Source: Phaeosaccion multiseriatum (taxonomy: Eukaryota > Protista > Ochrophyta, other classes). From it: a stretch of DNA of 64,000 bases. A program made the position numbers and the translations under genes. The stretch covers positions 558,001-622,000 of the forward strand of contig OZ218952.1 in the NCBI GenBank assembly GCA_965112735.1. Reading direction: 5' to 3'. The notes below the pieces were generated by a model that was given only the letters and a program-made list of their open reading frames with translations, was not told where the DNA came from and did no database searches. Below, piece after piece: positions 5,817-51,798 of the stretch; the stretch's first letter is position 1, and every line of letters starts with the position of its first letter.

Positions 5817-6582
5817 CCCTCCCCTCCCTCCTGTATGGGTCAGCACTTGAAGCACTTCGACATTGGGAATCGAGGAGGACTGAGTATTTTGGGTTGAGGA
5901 CGCAGGAGTGGTGTGGGAAAAAGTGGCAGGGGGAGCAGAGTGGCAGGGGGAGAAGAGAGAGAGCAGCAGTAGAGGTCAAGGCCGGAGCGAGGTGACAGCA
6001 CAGCCAGGGATGGACGAGACAGCCAGGGCCAGTTCGGGTACAGCACAGCCACATGTACTTCTTTGGGGAGACTCGGAGTCTCCTGTCTTATTTGGGGAGA
6101 CTTGGAGCGAGCAGGAGGCTACTTGTACTGAGGAGCGTGCTGAGAAGGGTCGTCACTGCCTTCCTCCGACATCATCCTCTTCGTCTATCCTCTCATCCCT
6201 CTCCCCTCATTGACATAAGCCGCGCGTGGGTTGTTCGGAGCTGCTGTCGGCTGAGTTTGGCAAGGATTTCGTAGCTTCTTCCCTACCTCTTTCCCTACTG
6301 AAAGTGGTGGTCCCTTTGATTGAGGAGCGTGCTCAGTGCTCAGCCAAAAGGGACGTGTATAACGTTTTCCTCCCCCCCACACCCACTCTCCCCCCTTCTT
6401 TTTTTTTTTCATCGGCTCCACTTTTATTTTTAGTTTTTTCAACCGTTCATCATCTTGATCTGAGACGCTCACCCGTTCTCCCCTTATTTTCAGCTGCTGC
6501 TTATTTATCATCCTCCTTTCCTCTCTCCCATACACATCCTTTATTTCGCGCATCATCTCCATACTCTCTCCTCTGCAGCCCT

Positions 6583-9444
6583 ATGCGATTGCTTCGGAGG
6601 CTAGGCAGTGGAGGACGCCGCAGCAGTAGCAGTACCGCGCTACCCCTCCATGATACTAGAGGAGAAGCCGCAGCAGCGCCCCCGCCACCCCCGATAGGTT
6701 GGACTAACAACTTCGAGGAGTCCGCAGGGAGGAAGATTGTTGACGATGATGATGACGACGATGAGGAAAGCAGAGATGAAGCATCAAAGCGTGATTCGAA
6801 AGGGAGGAGGCCTACTACAGTATCGCCAGGCGACGGGGGAGGGGGTGATGGAGGAGAACTAGCACCACCTGCTGAGGTTCAGAACTTCACCACGCGGGAA
6901 GGTGTGGATGCGGGAGAAGAAGAGAAGAGAAAGAAGAAGACGTGGTTTCTTCCAGAGAAGGCATGGAGACCCCTCCGTACCTTTTTGGTGCTGTGTGTGG
7001 GGCTCGTAGCTACCCACTTTGTTGCGATGGAGTATGCCAAATCTCTGGACAGAGAGGAGATGACCGCCTACAGAGCCGACGTTGCGTACCTTCAGACCAC
7101 AGTCTTCAACCGACTCACGTCTTCAGACAGCGAGAGCGAAATCATCCGCGCGGCTCTGCAGACGTGGGGTGGTGGCGGCAACCTTACTCTGGGCCAATAC
7201 TCTGACTTGACCGCCCCGGGCACTTCGGAAGGAAAGGGTATTGTCTACACGAGCCGAGTGCCTGCGGCAGCTCGCTCTGAGTTCGAGACGGCCGCGTCGG
7301 TTTTGTACGGGCAGGACATTTTCGTGAAGCAGGGGCCTCCGGCAGGCCTCGTGGCTCGGGCAAACATCACAGAGGGAGAGGACTACTGGCCAATGACGTA
7401 CGTAGAGCCGCGCAACGACAGGGTAATGGGCTTTGATGTCTTTTCCGAGAGCAACCGACGGGCGGCAATTGAACGCGTTCTTTCCACGGGGCAAGTTGCG
7501 TACACGCTACCTGTCGCTGCTGCCGATACAGGAGAAACGGGATTCAGTAAGATACTGCCCGTCAGAGGAGGCCCATCGCTGCTTAGCAGCTCATCATCAG
7601 CAGCAGATGGGTCCGGGGGGGGGGGAGGCGATGACATTACGGGGATTCTCGTCGTTTTCATCAGGGTAGAGCGTGCTCTAGAGCAATCCTCGTTACGAAA
7701 GTTCGAGACGTCGTACCCTGGCACACAAACAGACATTGGCTTTCTCGCGAGCGATGAGTCGAGGGCGAGCCTCCACGGGGTGCCATTTTCGGATGCCTCG
7801 GGTGTGGTGTCGTCCAAGACGTTTTCCCGCTCCGAACCTACTTCGGACTCCGAAGCGTCGTTCTATGTGGAAACGGCCACTGCCCCGCGGCGCCTCGAGA
7901 AGCGAGGCCTTCGGGCGGAGTACTACGCTGTAATGGCGGGGGGCTGTTTGCTGCTTGTGCTGCTTTTCTATTGGGAGCGTCGCAATTTCTTGCTCCAGGC
8001 CGCCAGATCAGAAGCAGCGGCCGCAAGAGAGGCTTCTTTGGCCAAGTCGCGCTTCCTCCGCTCCATTACGCACGAGATTCGCACGCCCATGAATGGTATC
8101 GTGGGAATGGCCCAACTGCTCGAAAGCGTCGAGCTTCCCGACGCGGTGCTGCCGTACGTCAACGTGATACACTCGTGCTCTTCCACCTTGCTCAGCTTGG
8201 TGAACAACATTCTCGACATGAGCAAGATCGAGGCAGGCAAGATGGAGATTAGCAAGAGGTCGTTTCGCCTCGACACGCTCGCGGTGGAGATGGTGGAGAG
8301 TGCTTGGACCGTCCTCCATACAAGTAACACCTCGTCGCTCTCCAGCATGAGCCTCACCATCGGGAGCAGTGTGCCACGGGGTCGCGTGGTTGGCGACGAC
8401 GTGCGGATCCGACAGCTGTTCAACAACTTCATGAGTAACGCAACGAAGTTCACAAGGCACGGCTCCATCGATCTTTTTCTGGATGCCACGCAGACGAGCG
8501 GCGAGTCAGAGGAGGTGCTGATTAACCTCACTGTGCGCGACACGGGCATCGGGATGGCACCCGACGCGGTCGAGCGCCTGTTCAAACCCTTCGTCCAGGT
8601 GCACGACAGCGCGACTACCAACGTGCAGGGCACTGGCCTGGGGCTGGCCATCTCCGTCGCCCTTGCTCGGGCCATGGGGGGAGACGTGACCTGCTCGTCG
8701 GTGTTGGGCAAGGGGTCGAAGTTTCACTGCACCTTCAACGTGGAAGGCAAGCTTCGCAAGGCTACCACGGTGGCCCATCGGCGAGTGTACACGAGAGATG
8801 ACGGTGTACGAGTGGAAGGAGAGGCACTCATCCCAGCCAGCACGGAGGACACATTTGATGGGTCGGGGACGAGCGCGACTCCGAGGGAAGTAGAAGGAGG
8901 AGCAGTTGCTGCTCACAGGGGACTCATGGGGGAAGCTCCTCGTCCTCCCAGCGTGCTAGTGGTGGACGATAACAAGATCAATCGCATGGTGCTGAGTAAG
9001 CTGCTGGGCTCGCTCGGTGTGCTCGTGGAGAGTGCAGACACCGGCGTTACAGCGGTGGAGTCTTGCGGCCAGCAGCGCTTCTCTTTGATCCTGCTGGACA
9101 TGGTCATGCCGGTGATGGACGGCGTCGACGCCGCTCGCGAGCTGAGAGCTGGCGACGGCCCTTGCAAAGACACGCCCATCATCTTCCTCACTGCGGATTG
9201 CTCGACGGAGGCCATGCGAGAGTGTAGGGAGGCGGGCGGGAACGAATTCTCCACCAAGCCTGTGCGGCGAGAGACCCTCGTCGCGAAGATGGCGGACCTT
9301 TTGCAAGCGCCCGAGCGCAGCTGGCTTTTGGACAAGGAGAGAGAGTTCTGCGAGTCGAGGAAGCAGGCCACCCACCTGCAAGGCATGGCGCGGGTACGGG
9401 CAGAGGAGAGCAGCACGCGCAGCCGAGAAGACGAAGGCGACTGA
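6583..9444 (+). CDS. Membrane hybrid histidine kinase, TM-CHASE-TM-HisKA-HATPase_c-REC, single coding exon
   Basis: CHASE: YWPMTYVEP..VMGFDVFSESNRRAAIERVLSTG. H-box AKSRFLRSITHEIRTPMNGIVGM. N box RIRQLFNNFMSNATKFT. G1 DTGIGM, F box LFKPFVQ, G2 GTGLGLAIS. REC: VLVVDDNKIN..LILLDMVMPVMDG..FLTA..KP. ATG at 6583 follows a ctgcag acceptor, suggesting a 5'UTR intron. Confidence 0.95.
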   Translation: MRLLRRLGSGGRRSSSSTALPLHDTRGEAAAAPPPPPIGWTNNFEESAGRKIVDDDDDDDEESRDEASKRDSKGRRPTTVSPGDGGGGDGGELAPPAEVQNFTTREGVDAGEEEKRKKKTWFLPEKAWRPLRTFLVLCVGLVATHFVAMEYAKSLDREEMTAYRADVAYLQTTVFNRLTSSDSESEIIRAALQTWGGGGNLTLGQYSDLTAPGTSEGKGIVYTSRVPAAARSEFETAASVLYGQDIFVKQGPPAGLVARANITEGEDYWPMTYVEPRNDRVMGFDVFSESNRRAAIERVLSTGQVAYTLPVAAADTGETGFSKILPVRGGPSLLSSSSSAADGSGGGGGDDITGILVVFIRVERALEQSSLRKFETSYPGTQTDIGFLASDESRASLHGVPFSDASGVVSSKTFSRSEPTSDSEASFYVETATAPRRLEKRGLRAEYYAVMAGGCLLLVLLFYWERRNFLLQAARSEAAAAREASLAKSRFLRSITHEIRTPMNGIVGMAQLLESVELPDAVLPYVNVIHSCSSTLLSLVNNILDMSKIEAGKMEISKRSFRLDTLAVEMVESAWTVLHTSNTSSLSSMSLTIGSSVPRGRVVGDDVRIRQLFNNFMSNATKFTRHGSIDLFLDATQTSGESEEVLINLTVRDTGIGMAPDAVERLFKPFVQVHDSATTNVQGTGLGLAISVALARAMGGDVTCSSVLGKGSKFHCTFNVEGKLRKATTVAHRRVYTRDDGVRVEGEALIPASTEDTFDGSGTSATPREVEGGAVAAHRGLMGEAPRPPSVLVVDDNKINRMVLSKLLGSLGVLVESADTGVTAVESCGQQRFSLILLDMVMPVMDGVDAARELRAGDGPCKDTPIIFLTADCSTEAMRECREAGGNEFSTKPVRRETLVAKMADLLQAPERSWLLDKEREFCESRKQATHLQGMARVRAEESSTRSREDEGD

Positions 9445-43164: not shown

Positions 43165-43309
43165 TTGCAGTTTAGTCAAATCTTTTGGAAAATCTTTTTT
43201 TTTCAAAAAAAGGCCGCCCTCCCCCCAAATAAAATTTTACTTCCTTTTTATCTTTTTTTTTCTTGATCAAGCTTGACCTTGAACATCCAGAGAGAGGTTG
43301 CGCATACAA

Positions 43310-43470
43310 TCGACCCCTGACGTGCTATTATGCTATCTGCGATAGCATGCTATTGGGCGCCCCGGCGCCCAATAGCATGCTATTTGCACTCGGCGAATAG
43401 CAGATAGCACGCCGGCTGGCGCCGGCGAATAGCAGATAGCACGCCCCGTCGCGCCGGCGATAGCAGACGC
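43310..43470. repeat. Left TIR, perfect 20-bp-stem palindrome (43342-43383) and subterminal ~30-bp repeats
   Basis: atagcatgctattgggcgcc-cc-ggcgcccaatagcatgctat, followed by 2-3 units of atagcagatagcacgccggctggcgccggc. Confidence 0.92.
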
Positions 43471-43639
43471 CCTGCGACAGCCTTTCCACTCCTAGCTGCC
43501 TGCCTAATCAGCATACGTCGAGCGCAGAGAGTATGCGAGCCTTCAGTCTTATATTACCAATACAATGGTGGCTGGGCGAACCTTGGCGTTCCCCTCTCCC
43601 CCCATCTCCCTCTCTCGCGAGGCAGCCATCTCTCCTTCA

Positions 43640-46469
43640 CTAACCCAGGACGCACTTATGCAAGGCCGAGTTGTAAACGTCGGGCAAGGAACCGTTGCGC
43701 ATCCCGGAGCTCAGGTACGCCCGAAAGAGGCGAGTTCTCTCTGCCTCATACTCTTCGCAGGTCAGACACGGCAGCCCACACGCGGCCAAGAAGCGGTCCA
43801 CGGTCTCCTTCTTTGCCCCCGCCGCACTAGACAAAATCGCTACACCGTCGTCCCTTTCCCAGCTGTTGTCTTGCTCAACACCATAGAGCACTTTGCGCAT
43901 GGGGCTGGTGTCTGCCACAGCCAATTTCGACATGAATAGAGCTGTTGCCGGACCGCAAGAATTCGAGCCGGCCTTCTGCTGTGGCACACCAACAAAGACC
44001 TGCCGGAATCGGAGGGCTGCCGTCCCAGGGGCTCTTTCGTCCTCCATGACCTTCTCCACATACACCTGCGTCGCTTGGAGCACTCGCTTCGAAGGGTGGT
44101 GACCGAGGCGCCCATTTCGGACCGTATCAAAGTGCAGAATGTACGCCATAGCACCCTCCCCGTCGTCACTAGCTGCAGAGGTAGGTAGAAGGACAGCGAC
44201 AGTCGAGAAATGGCCGCTGAAACTCGCAGGGAGGAGGAGGAGCTCACACTTCGTCATTGTAAGACCAGACTCCCTGTAACCTTTCGGCAGGAACCCTTTC
44301 GGAGCCGTCGCCAACACGTTGGGCATGGGGGAGTTCTCCACAGCTGGGTTGAAAATGTGACCAAGAGACGCGCACGGGAGTAGTGCCCTGTTTCCGTTCA
44401 CGGATACAGTGGTCATCATCGCGTCCAAAAAGAAGGAGGTGTACTCCCCCTTTTCCTTGTGCATGTCCTGCTCAGCGCCGAGGACAAGCAGCCTCGCCTT
44501 CATGTCCCCTGTCAGCTGCTCAGCGTCGGCCACTGATTGTGCCGCAGGCATGGCCCTGCTTTTCTTCTGGTGGGAAGAAGGGCTGCTGCCCCCCTCCTGC
44601 TCCTCCTCCTCCTCCTCCTCCTGCTCCTCCTCCTCCCCCCCCTCCTGCTCCTCCTCCTCCTCCTCCTCCTCCTCCTCCTCCTCCTCCTCCTCATCATCAT
44701 CATCATCATCATCACCACCACCATCATCCTCCTCCTCCTCCTCCTCCTCCTGCTCCTCCTCCTCCTGCTTCCCCAACGCCGTCTTCAGTAGGAAGTGAGA
44801 GAGTGCAGCTTGCATGCTTTTCTGACCGCTCGATGAGTGGGAGTCTCTGTGGCGCTTAACGCCAGACAAATGAGTCCACTGAGGCTTGTACTTGCCCTTC
44901 CCGGCGCTCTGACAAGCAGGCCTGGTGCACACAACAGATACCAGCATATCCAATGATGTTCTGGCGTGTCTGATGGAGAAGTTCGCTTTGGCCTCAAGCT
45001 GAATCAAAGCTGGCGTATGGATCTTCACGAAGCTTGCTGCATCACCGACCTTGCTTCCGCTGAGAGTTTGCATCTCCACATCAGGCATTTCCCGCAAAAG
45101 ATAAAAGAACTTGGTTCCTTGCGCGTGGAGCCAGCTCTTCGCCTTCTTCGTCAGTGCCCCCTCTTGCCCCGCCTTCCCGCCTTTCGTCCCGCCGGCACTC
45201 TCTCCCTCACTATCACTGGTGGTCTCACTGACACGGGCAGCACCACCTCGATGACCTGCCTTCTTGGGTGGGGTATGGGTCGAAAAATCTGTGGCGCTGT
45301 CCAGAGATTGGGTAGGGAAAGACAGGCAAATTTGCACGTTCTCCTGCTGTCTCGCCCCTGATTTCGGGCGTAGCTCGCAGTACAGATCCAGTCTCCACCG
45401 TTTGTCGGGATCGATACGGCCCGGAGGGAAAGTGTAGAACGAGCGCACCTGTATTGGGTGTGTGTTGGAGAAAGAGACAGAGAGGGGCGGGGGGGGGGGC
45501 GGGTTTAAGAAAGGGTTGCTGCCGTAGCAGACAATGCACAAACATCGAGAGGCAGTTGTACCCGACACGTACCACGCGGCGCAGGGAGACGTCGTCGCGG
45601 ATTGTATCCAACCCTCTGCCACGTCTGAATGCCGTGGAGGCTCTGATCGTGATGTCGTTCTTCTTTTGTTCCGTCTGAAAGAGCAATTCGCTGGTCAAAT
45701 GTCCACGGAAGGCCTTGAAGCTGGAGAATCGCTTGTCTTCATTAGCCAGCTGGAACGTGTAGGGCAAGGTCTCGAAGAGCTCGGTCGTGTTGCAGGACAC
45801 CGATGTGCCGAGACTGAAATCAGCCTCGACGGGGTTGAGGCATCCTCTTGGAAATGTCCCCACATGCGCGAACATGAGAGGGGTAGGTTTTGCCTGTCCC
45901 ATCCCTGCACTCAGGGGCAAGGCATAATCGAAGTCTTGTGCCTCAGAAGACGATGCCAAGGTTGCCGTACTCTGGAGATAGGTGTCCTCAAGCCGCCCCC
46001 CCTCCTCCCACCCCAGCTCGTGAGAAGCGTGTTGTGAATGGCTGCTTCGGCGTACTCCCCTGTCGCTGGGACTTTGGTTCCGACGCATTTCCCTCGCGCC
46101 TGCTGGGAATCCTCTTTCGCTGGGACTGCGGCCCCGTCTCCCTTTGCTTCGACCCTTTTCTCCTTCCCTCCTCCCTCCTCCTCCTCCGGATCTGGGTCGG
46201 CTCCGACTCCTGCTGGTACTTCTCCCTGCCCTCCTCCTCTCGGTGTCCTTCCCCCTACTCCGACTCCTGCTGGCATTTCTCCCTCGCTTCCTCCTCTCAC
46301 TGTGCTTCTCCCTGCTCCAACTCCTGCTGGCACTCCTCCCTCTCCTCGCCCTCTCAGGGGCCTTCTCCCGGCTCCGACTCCTGCTGCCAACTGGACTTGG
46401 CGTGCCTCTCCTGCTGTTGTAGTAGTCGCCCCCCCCCCCCCAACTCCTCCCTCCATCGCGGCCAGACAT
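43640..46469 (-). CDS. Transposon-encoded Ulp1/SENP (C48) SUMO-protease-like protein, ~901 aa, with RS-rich N-terminus and a possible C2H2-like Zn site
   Basis: join(46469-45573, 45448-43640), phase-0 GT-AG intron. Catalytic motifs SGHFSTVAV (His), ILHFDT (Asp), VPQQKAGSNSCG (Gln/Cys). RSRSRSR repeats in exon 1. CTRPAC..KRHRDSH. Confidence 0.85.
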
Positions 46470-46565
46470 GAAGGACTTTTGAACCAGTGGGGCCCAGCCA
46501 TGGGCCCAGCCAGCTATAAGCCAATAAAGATTCTGCCGTTTCACATTTGGCCACAAACAAAGGCG
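46470..46565. promoter_or_regulatory. Candidate compact bidirectional promoter between the two transposon genes
   Basis: 96 bp between the divergent ATGs (46469 on -, 46566 on +). Contains two gggcccagcca copies, TATAA and CCAAT. Confidence 0.45.
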
Positions 46566-49500
46566 ATGGGCGCCGCGGGCTCGTCCGCGACAGAAGAAGA
46601 CCATGGGCGGGTGGCTGTGACGGAAGACGCGGACAGCGGGCGTGTAGAGCTTACCCGGGACGTAAACGATGTCGACATTGTTCCCTTTGCGATCCAATTC
46701 CATCTTGATCGAGGGCACTTTACTCGGAGTCACTTCATGTATCAAACGGTGCATCGTTGGGTCATGAACAGCGGCCTTTGGTCCAGGCGTCAGACTGTGG
46801 CCGCGAGCAAGCAGCTCAATGGCTACGAGACGCTGCGACAGTTTAATGAGACCCAGCAGAACGTATTTGGTTCAGCATGCTCCATGCTCTCCTATGGGGC
46901 ACCCCGCAGAAAGAAGGTTCGTGGCCCCAACGTCTCCAGGGACCAGGCCATGAAGGACTACTTCCGCAGGGCGAACACAGGCGGCTTTCATCCGAGAGCA
47001 CTCATTAGGCGCAGGCCTGGCCTAATCAAGAGGTACGGTCTGCAAGTCGAAGACATTATCAACGTCGTCAATGTCTTCGCCCGCTTCTGTGCCGACCAAG
47101 CCTACACTCTTGGCGACAAAGGCAACGAGAAGATTGTGGTTCCCGTGACTGTCAAAATGGATGGCTTCGTCATTGCCAAGGGCCATCATACTGATACAAC
47201 CAGCCAAACCAATTGGGGCAATGCACATCAGTTTGGAAATACAACACTGGAGCAGGCGAAGGCAATACTGGAAAAGTCTGATGCTCAGGTGCGTGGCGTC
47301 CCCTCCTTCCCACTGATCTTTCGGGGCAGAATCACTGTTGATCCATCGTCAATCTTAATCACGCCTCCTCGCTCGCTCGCTCACGCTGCAGCCCCGCCTT
47401 TGCTTCGCCTCCTGTCAACCCTCCCTTATCGCTACTCGTTCTGTTCCAGCTGCGAGACGAGGACGCACCTAAGCTGGGTTCCGAGATGATGGAAGTTATG
47501 ATGATGGATCTGAAAGGGGCATACACGGGCTCCATCGGTTTTCAGCTTCACACCGCAGGGGGTGACTACAAAAGTGTTGCCGCGAGCGTGACCGAAATCA
47601 TGAAGGCGCTGCGTGTTTGCATCCCTTGTCTCGAGCTTTTCTGGCAGCGGATTCTGACGGGGGAGAACCCCTCGTGGGTGGAGATGGGCGAGGCGTGTGA
47701 TTGCCACCAAGCTTGTCCCACCGGAGGGGAGGGTCCTTGCGGTGAAAGTGAGTGCGTTTGCGCGACTCAGTTCTCCAGCAGAGTCTGCTCGAGGTGCAAG
47801 AGGAAAGGGCTCGTGTGCAAGAGTCTCCGACCATTGTGCATCTCAACAGACTGTAATGGCGCACAGCTTGCCTTCATTCGGAAAATGGCGGCAAGAACCC
47901 TCGGAGAGGACGACCCCCTGGGGTGGTATGAGGCACTGCCTGACGGGGCTCACCTTGTAAAGTGTGTTCGTGCTACGACATTCAATTGGTGGGTCGTCTG
48001 CCAGGGCTGGCTAGTCGGACTGCGAACTCTTCGCGCCAGATTCCACGATCTGGACCCGGCTCGAAGTGAAGCAGTACAAGCCAATGTTGGCCTTGACGCC
48101 ATTGAAAACAAGGATCCTTTCTCAGTGGAGAGCGCAATCGCTGTTACGACGGCGTCTCTGCAGTTGGCTCTACTCTCAGAGGAGGAGCGGGAGAAGCGCC
48201 GTGCTCTCGTGGGGGTGACCGTGTGCCCGGAGCCGTGGGGTTTCTGGCATCAGAACATGGCCTCGCAGACTCAGAAGCCGACTGGTATGGGCTACCATCA
48301 TGGCTCTGGCATGATCTTCAACGCCGATCGTTCAGGCAGGCATCTGCGCATGCTCAAGGCCCATCATGTGCCTTGTACCACAGAGGTTGTTCTGCGAGAC
48401 GACTGCTTCCAGAGTCTTGGGTCTCTCGTCGTGGTTGGCGACTACGTGTACATGTGTGACAGTGGAGCGAATCAGATTTGGGTGGTGCATGTGCTGGCCG
48501 CTCTTCCAGGAAACAGGGGACCCCGCGCGGCGGCGGAGGAGGGCGACGATGATGATGACGACGACCAGCAACCGGACGGGCATGTAGCAGCGCGTGGTCG
48601 GGGGAGACAGACTCAGCAACGGCATTTGAATTTGAAGGCAGTGCCCTTGGTCCGTCGGATCCAGGAGCGTTGCACTTCTGAGGAGAATGTCCTCGAGGAG
48701 AGAGAAGAGGAGGGCATCCGTTGCCCCGTTGCCATTGCGCTTGCCGTGTCCTCTGAGCGCGCGTTCGACCTCTTTGTCACCCAAGAGGAACCTGGCGGGG
48801 GGGGAGCACTACACCGGCTCTCATTTGACGCTGGCAACCTTTTGCACCTGTGAGCGAGAAGCTGTGTGACCTACCCAAGGGACCTGCGGGCCTCACAGCA
48901 CTCTCGCATGACTGCGTTGCCTGCATCGCCGACAGCTCGCTTTTTGTCTGGGAGGGCAATGTGGAACGTGCCGGAGGACCAGAGGGTGGCAGTGGCAATG
49001 ACGGAGATACACTCATGGCTCTGACTGATGACGAGGAAGATGGTACTGTTGAGAAGCCAAGGCGCGCACACCTCACGTGCGTGAAGTCTCACGTGGGGAC
49101 TCAGCCTTGTGGACTCACGTTGGCCCCACCCGGTGCATACGATGATGAAGATATGATCGTCATCCTCATGCTAGATGAAGGTTTGCATGCGCTTGTCAAG
49201 GTTCTCCTTCGTCGTGACAGTGGGGTGCTAAGCTGGAAGGGATCATCCGTGCTGATGGGCGGACAGGGAAACACAGAACCCGGAGAGAGCACTGCCAGCG
49301 GTACGGCATCGAAAGTACCTTTGTTCAGACCTACGTTCGGCTGCTTCGTGTACAACGCTTTCTTCTTGTCCGACACTGGAAACCAGTGCATTCGAATGAT
49401 CTCGGACTGCTACGTCTACGCCCAGCACCTCATCCCACTACAACGGATGTTGAGTGAGGCGTATCAGCTCCAGGGCGAAGACTTGGATGAGAATGGCAAA

Positions 49501-51319
49501 GACATGCAAAACAACGCACGCACGATGGAGGAGAGCATTGCCAAGCTTCATGTGGTCGACTTGGCTCTCAGTCACATGGGGAAAGCGATATCAGCTGCCA
49601 CAGGCAAATCCCTGGTCTCTCTCCAGGGCCCTGAAGGAATGCCATCACGCGAAGTTCGAGGTGCTATCAAGGCGAGCCTGCAGGCACTACCTCGGATGCT
49701 ACATCGGATGCTTGCAGAGGTGAGAAGGGGGTGCTCCCCATGGCTGTGTGCGTGTGTGTGCGTGAGTGCGTGAGTAAAAATGTCCGTGTCCGTGGGCGCG
49801 TGCGTTTGGAAATCAGCCTTGCCCTTTCGTCTCACGGCTTCGCTGTTCGCTCCTTGCTTGATGCTTCCTCGCTCATTTCCGTCAGCAGGGAGTGCCTCGC
49901 GGCATCGTGGAGAAGATGCAGATGAGGAGCGTTTTGACCCTCAATGTTGAGACTTTCTTCACGAAGCAAAGGGAAGGCCGCCAGGATGTTCCAGACGCTC
50001 TTGAGTATGCCCGAAGAAGGGGCCTTGTGATGCTTGAGGCTGCGAAGAAGGCCAACCCCAGCATGGGCTTTGCCTACTGCACAAGCAGCGTCAACAGCAG
50101 CGGTCGAAAGCTCAGGGCGGGATACCAGCTGGAGCAAAACGAGAGCAGATTGGTGGCTTCACCCGTGTTGAAGCGACCAAGGGTAGCGGAGAAGCTTGAC
50201 GAAGGGCAACGGAAGCAGCGCAAGAAGGACACGCAGGCGCTTCGCAATGCGGCGGCTCGTCTTAGGAAGGTTCCGCAGCAGCGTGTAACCAACAAGAGGA
50301 AGTACAATGTTGGAGCGGCCCCGCGTTCGGTGGCGTTTGCTCCCAACTCTGCGCAAAGCAACGACCCGAGTGGATACCTGTCGCGCTTGCATGAGAGCTC
50401 GGGAGCGAGGAAGCGCGGACAGAAAGGACGGAAGACCGGTGAATCCGTCCGAACTCGCATTCTCTACAGGGCAAATGACGTTGTGATAGTCAGGGCAGAC
50501 AAGGGGTCGGAGGAGAGCTTTTTTCGTGCACAGCTTCGCGTCGATCTTCGGAAGGAGGTGATCGTCTCGAAGAAGGGACGAGGCTCCAAGCAGAAGGTGG
50601 TTCCGGCAAAGCCTGGTGTTTCATACTTTCACGTCGCTGAACAGGACTCTACCGACGAGTCCCAGGACGGGGATGGGGCTGCAGCAGTCGTCTACGAAGT
50701 CGACGGCGGGAAAGAGGCTTCTGTGTCTTGTGCTGCCATTTATGGCGCATTGCCCCGCTACCACGAAGCAATGTACATCGAAGGCTCACATGCAGCTTCA
50801 GGAGGGGTGTGCGCGCAGAGAAGGCTTCGGAGGTTTGCCATCACGGAGGAGCAGCACGAGGAGTGCAAGCAGATTGTCAACAGAGAGGCGGAGGGCCAAG
50901 AGGTGGCCAAGGCGATGGGATACGCCCCCCCCGACCCAAGCGTGCACATGGGAGAGGACATGTCTGAGGACGATAGCAGTGATGGCGAGCAGGAGGCGCT
51001 GAACCTGAGAACACTGCGCAAGAACATCATCGGAAAGGTGGTGGGGGCGATGTCCTCACGTGGGCGCACGGTAAACAAGCCCGAGAGTTATGGGGCTTTG
51101 TCTCGTGGCACGGCAAAAGCAGCAGACTCTAGCTCCAGCGAAGCCACTGCATGTCTAGTCTGTCAGAAAGATGTTGACCACGACAAAATGTTGCTATGTG
51201 ACGGCTGCGATGAGGAGTTTCACACGTACTGCCTGACCCCTCCCCTCTCTACGCTTCCTGAAGGGGACTGGTATTGTGATGGAGTGAATGCTGCCTGCTC
51301 TAGTGGTAAAAGTGACTGA
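46566..51319 (+). CDS. Putative DDE transposase (~1,450-1,475 aa) with Cys-rich insert, internal NHL beta-propeller and C-terminal PHD finger; one frame break near 48840
   Basis: Exons 46566-47288, 47450-49719, 49889-51319. Candidate catalytic motifs: VKMDG (D 47160), STDCNG (D 47849), PDGAHLVKCVR (DxxH, 47942), NVETFFTKQR (E 49949). NHL-like blades: KPTGM..IFNAD, VYMCDSGANQIWV, RPTFGC..FLSDTGNQCIRMI. PHD: CLVC..MLLCDGCDEEFHTYCLTPPL..PEGDWYC. Confidence 0.8.
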
Positions 51320-51569
51320 TTGGCGAGCACAATGTCGATCGGGCCGTCCGCCGGCTGAGCTAGCGGAGAGCCAGTCAATCACAGGGCGGAGAGGTAGGGG
51401 TGCACGGGCAGCAGGTCAGCCAGGCCAGGCAGAGGGTGGACCTTGATATACTCCCTTAGGCATACTATACAAGAACTGACGCGAATTAATGGCAATGAAA
51501 CACGTGTGAGTTGCTTCCTCCGCTCCTAGCCCCCCGCACGCGCACCCTCCCACCCCCGACCCCGGGGGG

Positions 51570-51698
51570 GCGAATAGCACAAAACGCCGGCTGGCGCCGG
51601 CGATAGCACATAGCACGCCGGCTGGCGCCGGCAATAGCAGATAGCACGCCGGCTGGCGCCGGCGATAGCAGATAGCATAATAGCACGTCAGGGGTCGA
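51570..51698. repeat. Right subterminal ~30-bp repeats (about 3 units) plus right TIR
   Basis: Units of atagca(c/g)atagcacgccggctggcgccggc run into the TIR at 51668-51698. Confidence 0.92.
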
Positions 51699-51798
51699 AT
51701 ACAAGCAAGGGACGTGTATTCATACATCACGCACAGAGTGCAGCAGCAACGAGCACACTAGTGCAGCAGCGAGCGTGGGTTGTCGACAGCGCTCCGTG

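Follow-up and report, generated by a model that had tools for sequence, protein, structure and literature searches.

A probable DNA transposon of Phaeosaccion multiseriatum whose P-like transposase is predicted to hold an NHL-type propeller in its catalytic domain

The DNA analysed here (the window) is a stretch of 64,000 nucleotides of Phaeosaccion multiseriatum (contig OZ218952.1, positions 558,001 to 622,000 of the forward strand), which is eukaryotic, has a guanine-cytosine (GC) content of ~58% and contains many microsatellites. Positions 43310-51698 of the window delimit an element of 8,389 bp with a transposase gene inside, and this element is probably one copy of an autonomous cut-and-paste DNA transposon with terminal inverted repeats (TIRs), whose P-like transposase, of the type with catalytic Asp, Asp and Glu residues (DDE), carries an NHL-type β-propeller within its catalytic domain. 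The TIRs were found by reading the sites of similar tandem repeats identified with Tandem Repeats Finder (TRF; 43391-43467 and 51569-51677) and were then checked by script, while a general inverted-repeat scan gave low-complexity pairs only among its best 25. The ends of the element comprise the following features.

43304-43309, no strand: left target-site duplication (TSD), ATACAA, an identical 6-mer lying directly outside both TIRs (chance at fixed positions ~1/4096).
43310-43340, + strand: left TIR, 31 bp, TCGACCCCTGACGTGCTATTATGCTATCTGC, a perfect reverse complement of 51668-51698, the two being its sole occurrences within the window.
43341-43470, no strand: left subterminal repeats, a palindrome and a 32-bp unit with ATAGCAGATAGCACGCC, present in 2.4 copies (TRF and sequence).
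51569-51667, no strand: right subterminal repeats, 3.5 copies of the 31-bp unit GGCGATAGCACATAGCACGCCGGCTGGCGCC (TRF and sequence).
51668-51698, - strand: right TIR, 31 bp, the reverse complement of the left TIR.
51699-51704, no strand: right TSD, ATACAA, matching the left copy.

An earlier note on this DNA had proposed checking whether homologues also sit between TIRs, and TIRs were present both in the window (31 bp) and in L002, the contig that encodes the relative P0002. The L002 element displays perfect 23-bp TIRs 10.7 kb apart, which begin TCGGCCCCGGAC, while the window TIR begins TCGACCCCTGAC; both therefore start with TCGRCCCC-GAC. L002 also shows subterminal repeats of its own and carries the same genes, among them a transposase with a C-terminal PHD finger and, in divergent orientation, a second gene. 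In contrast to the TIRs, the subterminal repeats of 31-32 bp in the window (43391-43467 and 51569-51677, with a ATAGCAGATAGCACGCC core and a GC-rich palindrome) are oriented alike on the + strand at the left and the right end, and the two ends of the element are thus asymmetric. Judged from their sequence, these repeats are candidate binding sites for the transposase.

The transposase gene (~46.5-51.3 kb, + strand) comprises three exons, which are distributed over four consecutive + strand open reading frames (ORFs) in differing frames, 46038-47489, 47486-48853, 48850-49773 and 49892-51319. The second exon ends with the second helical arm described below; the remaining parts of the gene are as follows.

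46566-47288, + strand: exon 1, frame 0, with RNase H strand β1 and the first catalytic Asp, D1 (tblastn of relatives; alignment to Asp-226 of the relative P0005).
47289-47449, + strand: predicted intron 1, 161 nt, GTGCGT...CCAG, phase 0, at the switch from frame 0 to frame 2, across which the relatives are collinear.
48845-48852, + strand: frameshift between propeller blades 3 and 4, with a change from frame 2 to frame 1, where frame 2 reaches TGA at 48851 (tblastn of relatives).
49720-49885, + strand: predicted intron 2, 166 nt, GTGAGA...GTCAG, phase 0, spanned by amino acids 554 to 556 of P0003.
49886-51319, + strand: exon 3, with the catalytic Glu, a conserved C-terminal module, a PHD finger and the stop codon at 51317-51319 (ORF, alignment and Pfam).

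The two introns are predicted from the sequence and from collinearity with relatives. The position of intron 2 may be common to the relatives, as suggested by the prokaryote-style gene call P0002, which ends at the same point. The switch at 48845-48852 was assigned as a frameshift because relatives cross it without a gap (amino acids 288 to 293 of P0004 and 488 to 499 of P0002), and would be either a mutation of the window copy or an assembly error. Searches used exon pieces of the window gene or intact relatives. The start of the transposase is uncertain, with Met codons at 46038, 46500 and 46566. A long minus-strand ORF with an Arg/Ser-rich region (45225-46754) overlaps the Pro/Ser-rich start (46038-46560) of the + strand ORF; this overlap bears on the coding strand, on the start of the transposase and on a possible splicing of the minus-strand ORF to the protease-like ORF of the second gene.

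The residues predicted to form the catalytic centre, together with a Cys-rich insert, map to the following positions.

47160-47162, + strand: D1 (KMDGFV), aligning to Asp-226 of P0005, in strand 2-15 of the structural model.
47615-47818, + strand: Cys-rich helical insert between RNase H α1 and β4 (CxxC ... CDCHQAC ... CSRCx6C; family alignment A2; model helices 93-181).
47849-47851, + strand: second catalytic Asp, D2 (ISTDCNG), at the end of strand β4; Asp in 72 of 73 members, model position 197, after strand 186-196.
47942-47953, + strand: DxxH (PDGAHLVK), directly after β5 (family conservation).
49949-49951, + strand: catalytic Glu, E (NVETFF), in helix α4; Glu in 22 of 24 members, model helix 746-758.

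The three acidic residues and the DxxH motif listed in the earlier note are indeed encoded at these places, as GAT (Asp) at 47160, GAC (Asp) at 47849, GAG (Glu) at 49949 and GAC..CAC at 47942-47953 within PDGAHLVK. The Cys-rich insert proposed there between D1 and D2 was likewise recovered, at 47615-47818 and in the relatives P0005, P0015, P0018 and P0027. In family alignment A2, its Cys columns C135, C176, C179 and C186 show a conservation of 90% or more, and the insert is probably zinc-binding.

A HMMER pass with the second transposase ORF over 1.8 billion representatives identified 87 related proteins, 29 of them at E<1e-10, all unnamed (“hypothetical”) and derived from metagenomes or read assemblies. 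In each of P0005, P0015, P0018 and P0027, a single unbroken ORF encodes all of D1, the Cys-rich insert, D2, DxxH, the NHL repeats and E, and the single-ORF relatives lie on unrelated contigs with a GC content of 38-58%. The long members share a D1 strand with DGM or DAM, the D2 motif SDC..Q.A, the motif PDxxHxxKS and a “vE.fF..R” helix. Other searches were less productive: phmmer of the window pieces against PDB sequences gave nothing useful, a word-index protein search with the second piece returned no match, and the same type of search with the family alignment recovered only P0005, one 795-residue relative and one unrelated NHL protein. In the family alignment, Asp is found at D1 in 40 of 41 members, while the proportions at D2 and E are those given above; within DxxH, the acidic position is Asp or Glu in 84 of 85 members, His is present in 80 of 85 and the following Lys in 84 of 85. 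In each of the 24 members that cover both residues, the His of DxxH and the catalytic Glu are 507-608 residues apart. This constant spacing, together with the conservation of the catalytic residues, indicates that the large insert is a selected feature of the family and not an accident of the window locus.

Between DxxH and the catalytic Glu lie two helical arms that flank a propeller.

47954-48274, + strand: first helical arm of the insertion domain (NKDPFSVE, VCPEPWGFW), aligned to model helices 218-303.
48275-49410, + strand: six-bladed NHL-type β-propeller, read in frame 2 up to blade 3 and in frame 1 from blade 4 onwards (collinearity with relatives; model; Foldseek).
48536-48715, + strand: acidic loop between blades 2 and 3 (EEGDDDDDDDQQ...), probably disordered (sequence).
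49411-49719, + strand: second helical arm of the insertion domain, at the end of exon 2, aligned to model helices 635-727.

The family consensus of the first helical arm is RNKDxMxVE and TxxPExxxxWxxN. The six blade motifs of the propeller are KPTGM (48275), VYMCDSGANQIWV (48446), CPVAIAL (48722), PAGLTAL (48883), PCGLTL (49105) and FLSDTGNQCIRMI (49363), all within 48275-49401, and the window protein shows the NHL signature (hydrophobic-x-D/S-x-G-N-x-x-I/V-hydrophobic) in its second and sixth blades. The window sequence alone has no Pfam NHL match and would leave the assignment to NHL a matter of guesswork; the homologues are what establish it. Thus, the window pieces are collinear with relatives over all six blades, in pairwise as well as in multiple alignment. 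Pfam NHL (PF01436) is matched by 10 of the 92 family members (best score 38.5 bits, E 9.6e-10), and the family profile, searched against PDB sequences with hmmsearch, recognises SOQ1 (2.6e-15), Pizza6 (1e-14), NHLRC2 (3.5e-11) and PknD (1.6e-9). In one branch of the family (P0037, P0042, P0048, P0073, P0076 and P0078), the loop between blades 2 and 3 contains a SAP-like DNA-binding motif.

An AlphaFold2 model was calculated for residues 215-1000 of P0005 using the 92-row family alignment, and presented a mean predicted local distance difference test (pLDDT) score of 93.5 and a predicted template modelling (pTM) score of 0.91. The modelled chain begins with strand 2-15, which carries D12 (D1), followed by more strands and helices and by the helical Cys-rich region at 93-181. 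Strand 186-196 then leads to D197 (D2), and strand 213-216 to DxxH at the start of a helix, with helices extending to residue 303. The propeller comprises ~25 strands (309-634) arranged in six four-stranded blades, with one acidic loop of low confidence. Helices 635-745 follow, and then helix 746-758, which contains the catalytic Glu, E749. The window Asp, Asp, DxxH and Glu align to those of P0005, and the window pieces are collinear with the model throughout: D1, Cys-rich insert, D2, DxxH, first arm, six blades, second arm and Glu helix. The transposase is thus predicted to adopt a split RNase H-like fold with one Asp on β1, one Asp after β4 and the Glu on α4. In P, hAT and RAG1, too, an insertion domain splits the RNase H fold after β5 and the DxxH motif.

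Structural similarity search of the whole P0005 model against the PDB using Foldseek placed Pizza6, TRIM71/Lin41, TRIM2, TRIM3, PknD and Thin on top (E ~1e-11; target template modelling score, TMt, of 0.7-0.83), and only propellers were found among the at least 500 matches listed. The proposal of the earlier note, an NHL-type propeller with helical flanks between DxxH and the Glu, is therefore borne out by homologue alignment, model and Foldseek alike. The propeller shares six four-stranded blades with those of TRIM-NHL proteins, PknD, SOQ1 and NHLRC2, to which the profile and fold matches point. It differs from known NHL propellers in being an internal insert in the catalytic domain of an enzyme and not a terminal module, in the strong divergence of its blades, such that the window copy misses the Pfam model, and in the acidic or SAP-containing loop that splits blades 2 and 3.

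The changes of frame in the window, three in number and one of them a frameshift inside the propeller, would also fit propeller and DDE parts that belong to separate neighbouring genes, or a host NHL gene captured in a dead transposase. Separate genes were the finding that, according to the earlier note, would speak against its proposal, and they were not observed, since P0005, P0015, P0018 and P0027 hold both parts in one ORF. Relatives on unrelated contigs present core, propeller and core in one ORF with constant spacing, AlphaFold2 packs core and propeller as one body (pTM 0.91), and the other two frame changes of the window are clean GT..AG introns in phase 0. Two genes, or a captured one, are accordingly a highly improbable explanation.

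Because the propeller dominated the Foldseek list, the core was modelled alone (P0005 residues 215-525, pLDDT 87.9). The only significant PDB matches of this core were two strand-transfer complexes of the Drosophila P element transposase, 6P5A with E 5.2e-5 and 6PE2 with E 2e-4, each at a Foldseek probability of 1.00. Far behind them came ISCth4 (E 0.3), Hermes (E 1.7), Transib (E 2.5) and RAG-like entries, the whole group spanning E 0.3-2.7. Among solved transposases, the modelled core fold is thus nearest to that of the P element. The DDE core with DxxH proposed in the earlier note agrees with the conservation of the residues, and the Foldseek result shows the core to be P-like. The Pfam model PF21787 (TNP-like RNase H N-terminal domain) gave sub-threshold matches in three relatives, the best being P0042 with 22.2 bits against a cut-off of 24.6, and no window piece or relative scored above the gathering score of the Pfam TNP-like or Tnp_P_element models.

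Similarity to the P element and THAP9 extends beyond the core fold. The RNase H-like DDE core is split after β5 by a large insertion domain, DxxH follows the second Asp, the catalytic Glu lies in an “E-x-F-F...R” context, and the element presents 31-bp TIRs, subterminal repeats and an intron-containing gene. In the P transposase, an almost entirely helical GTP-binding domain of ~200 residues is inserted between β5 and α4 (PMC7776569), and the propeller-bearing insert of the new family occupies the same topological place. In contrast with P, the insertion domain spans ~510-600 residues, within which two helical arms enclose a six-bladed NHL propeller; an extra Cys-rich module separates D1 from D2, a PHD finger forms the C-terminus of the protein and the element contains an Ulp1-like second gene. 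The TSD, read from one copy, is 6 bp long, as its 7th and 8th bases differ, whereas P elements generate a TSD of 8 bp (7-8 bp). The family is not a clean member of P, given that it lacks both a THAP domain and a helical GTP-binding insertion domain, has a TSD of 6 bp and gives no match above a Pfam threshold. It is best described as a DDE transposase variant nearest to P, possibly a separate lineage.

Membership of the Dada superfamily was considered on account of the 6-bp TSD of the window. Dada elements encode a DDE transposase with DxxH, generate TSDs of 6-7 bp, have been reported from algae, protists and animals, and resemble P, hAT, MuDR and Kolobok only distantly (PMC3706591). The window family shares with them the length of the TSD, the DDE residues with DxxH after D2, a large intron-containing transposase and a wide eukaryotic range. 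Motif contexts and spacing differ, however: compared by eye, the Dada motifs of Dataset S1 (ILKMDSTKKV, LYVDRDCC, RLDVWHFMRRF and SLESFHLHLNR) are unlike KMDGFV, ISTDCNG, PDGAHLVK and NVETFF, and the distance from D2 to E is 176 residues in Dada-U6_DR against ~700 in the window family (PMC3706591). Dada has N-terminal CCCC and C-terminal CCHC fingers, whereas the window protein has a PHD finger at its C-terminus, and neither NHL nor PHD is mentioned in the Dada paper (PMC3706591). Scans of the entire window found no tRNA and no Rfam family, which removes a small-RNA gene as a Dada-like target. These differences make it distinctly unlikely that the element belongs to Dada.

Several observations weigh against a mobile, P-like element with an NHL propeller. 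Except for the PHD finger, the window pieces have no Pfam match, NHL included, even at E<=10 (four ORFs and nine sub-pieces). The model describes the relative P0005, which is ~30% identical to the window protein, and the match of its core to P transposase is modest, with a query template modelling score (TMq) of 0.44 and 11% identity. No THAP domain was identified in the window pieces or in the 92 scanned members, and no other recognised DNA-binding domain was found either. The window copy contains the frameshift and may therefore be inactive, unless this is an assembly error. Its TSD, of 6 bp and not the 8 bp of P elements, is known from one copy only, and L002 has no clean TSD, possibly as a metagenome assembly that merged copies. 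No second copy of the transposase gene was found within the window, and neither the TIR of the window nor that of L002 had an exact match in scans of metagenome contigs. Mobility is thus deduced from the structure of the element and not from polymorphic insertions.

The same lack of a second copy within the window would be compatible with a domesticated host gene, namely a chromatin protein that descends from a transposase, has NHL and PHD domains and no longer moves; the inverted repeats of the window would in that case be a relic. Fusions with PHD, SAP and PB1 are typical of chromatin proteins, and P0027 (1475 residues) was found as an identical protein with identical neighbours on L004, L005 and L006, three independent assemblies with ~38% GC, as a single-copy host gene would be. 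This threefold occurrence could reflect such a domesticated gene, or one organism sampled three times. The TIRs of the window are nevertheless perfect (31/31), its TSD is intact and its subterminal repeats match, which argues for a recent insertion; L002 is a second element with perfect TIRs of its own, and the catalytic residues are conserved throughout the family. Domestication of the family as a whole is unlikely, and domestication of some branches is compatible with the transposon interpretation preferred here.

At the C-terminus of the transposase, Pfam identifies a PHD finger (51152-51290, E 1e-11). P0003, P0004 and the L002 gene likewise end in a PHD finger, and Pfam PHD is matched by three family members. 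The last zinc-ligand pair of the window PHD (51269-51290) reads WYCDGVNAAC, where relatives have W-x-C-P-x-C; this could reflect degeneration of the finger at its C-terminal end, or a different splicing of the gene at its true 3' end. The region that separates the Glu helix from the PHD finger holds a conserved module (window ~50480-50800, P0003 ~770-900, P0015 ~990-1060 and P0027 ~1330-1400), with sequences such as “DVVIVRADKG..FFRAQL”, “GDLVAVKA..YYLCEL” and “GEVVAVSH..FFLAIL”, which is also present in relatives devoid of PHD. This module might be a small β-barrel reader domain.

The element contains a second gene on the opposite strand.

43640-45622, - strand: second gene, with a C-terminal part (43643-44416) similar to Ulp1/C48 cysteine proteases (GHFS, LHFD, VPQQ, SNSCGPA; ORF and motif pattern).

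Its His..Asp..Gln..Cys pattern (GHFS / LHFD / VPQQ..SNSCGPA) recalls Ulp1/C48 SUMO proteases. Homologues were found beside the transposase in L002 (1399-2130, - strand) and in L001 (4865-5362, - strand), making three elements in all. The second gene has no Pfam or PDB sequence match, and a profile of the three protease-like ORFs searched against the PDB was also empty; the Ulp1 identity is therefore a lead at motif level.

The combination of modules is reminiscent of the RAG recombinase. RAG2 is a separate subunit with a six-bladed Kelch propeller and a PHD finger, and is the partner of the Transib-derived RAG1. The window family and RAG1-RAG2/ProtoRAG have in common a DDE enzyme with an insertion domain, a six-bladed propeller and a PHD finger, a likeness that is a functional analogy only and implies no homology. 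Unlike in RAG, the propeller is of the NHL type and lies in cis inside a P-like core, and Transib and RAG-like proteins are only weak fold matches (E > 2).

In the mechanism that we propose, the transposase would bind the ATAGCA-rich subterminal repeats, cut at the TIRs and insert with a 6-bp stagger, steps that we put forward with moderate to high confidence. More speculatively, the helical arms might hold the transposon end and the target DNA, as other insertion domains do, the second arm leading into the helix that would carry the catalytic Glu. With similarly low confidence, the rigid propeller and the PHD finger could together offer a surface on which chromatin, target DNA or a partner docks, much as RAG2 does for RAG1. 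The earlier note had suggested that the propeller could serve in targeting or in RNA or protein sensing; chromatin or DNA would be favoured over RNA because of the C-terminal PHD finger and of the SAP-like motif in the propeller loop of one branch. A bolder reading, which we regard as tentative and rather doubtful, is that the family constitutes an unrecognised lineage of superfamily rank, sister to P/THAP9, in which propeller and PHD finger read chromatin or nucleosomal DNA to choose targets, as a single-chain counterpart of RAG1-RAG2. If true, nature would here provide a transposase with a programmable docking platform built in.

Where the structure of a eukaryotic DDE transposase has been solved, the insertion domain is mostly made of helices and makes direct contact with DNA. 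An NHL propeller of 330 residues at the position of the insertion domain, found across contigs of very different GC, would represent a new structural solution, and suggests a way in which catalysis could be coupled to recognising a feature of a protein, of RNA or of chromatin. Chromatin-guided integration becomes a testable idea in view of the PHD finger at the C-terminus, the SAP-like motif in the propeller loop of one branch and the Ulp1-like gene. No literature linking NHL repeats to a transposase was found in a search that did not extend to Repbase or Dfam; this result and the unnamed state of all relatives are consistent with the new transposase architecture that the earlier note had envisaged. 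As all members are annotated as “hypothetical”, with only scattered Pfam NHL and PHD matches, such elements may be left unclassified in genome annotation.

The remaining genes observed in the window include kinase, DEP and LRR genes as well as a hybrid histidine kinase.

6226-9444, + strand: CHASE-domain hybrid histidine kinase (CHASE, HisKA, HATPase_c and receiver domains), 1072 residues, intron-free, a host gene unrelated to the transposase.

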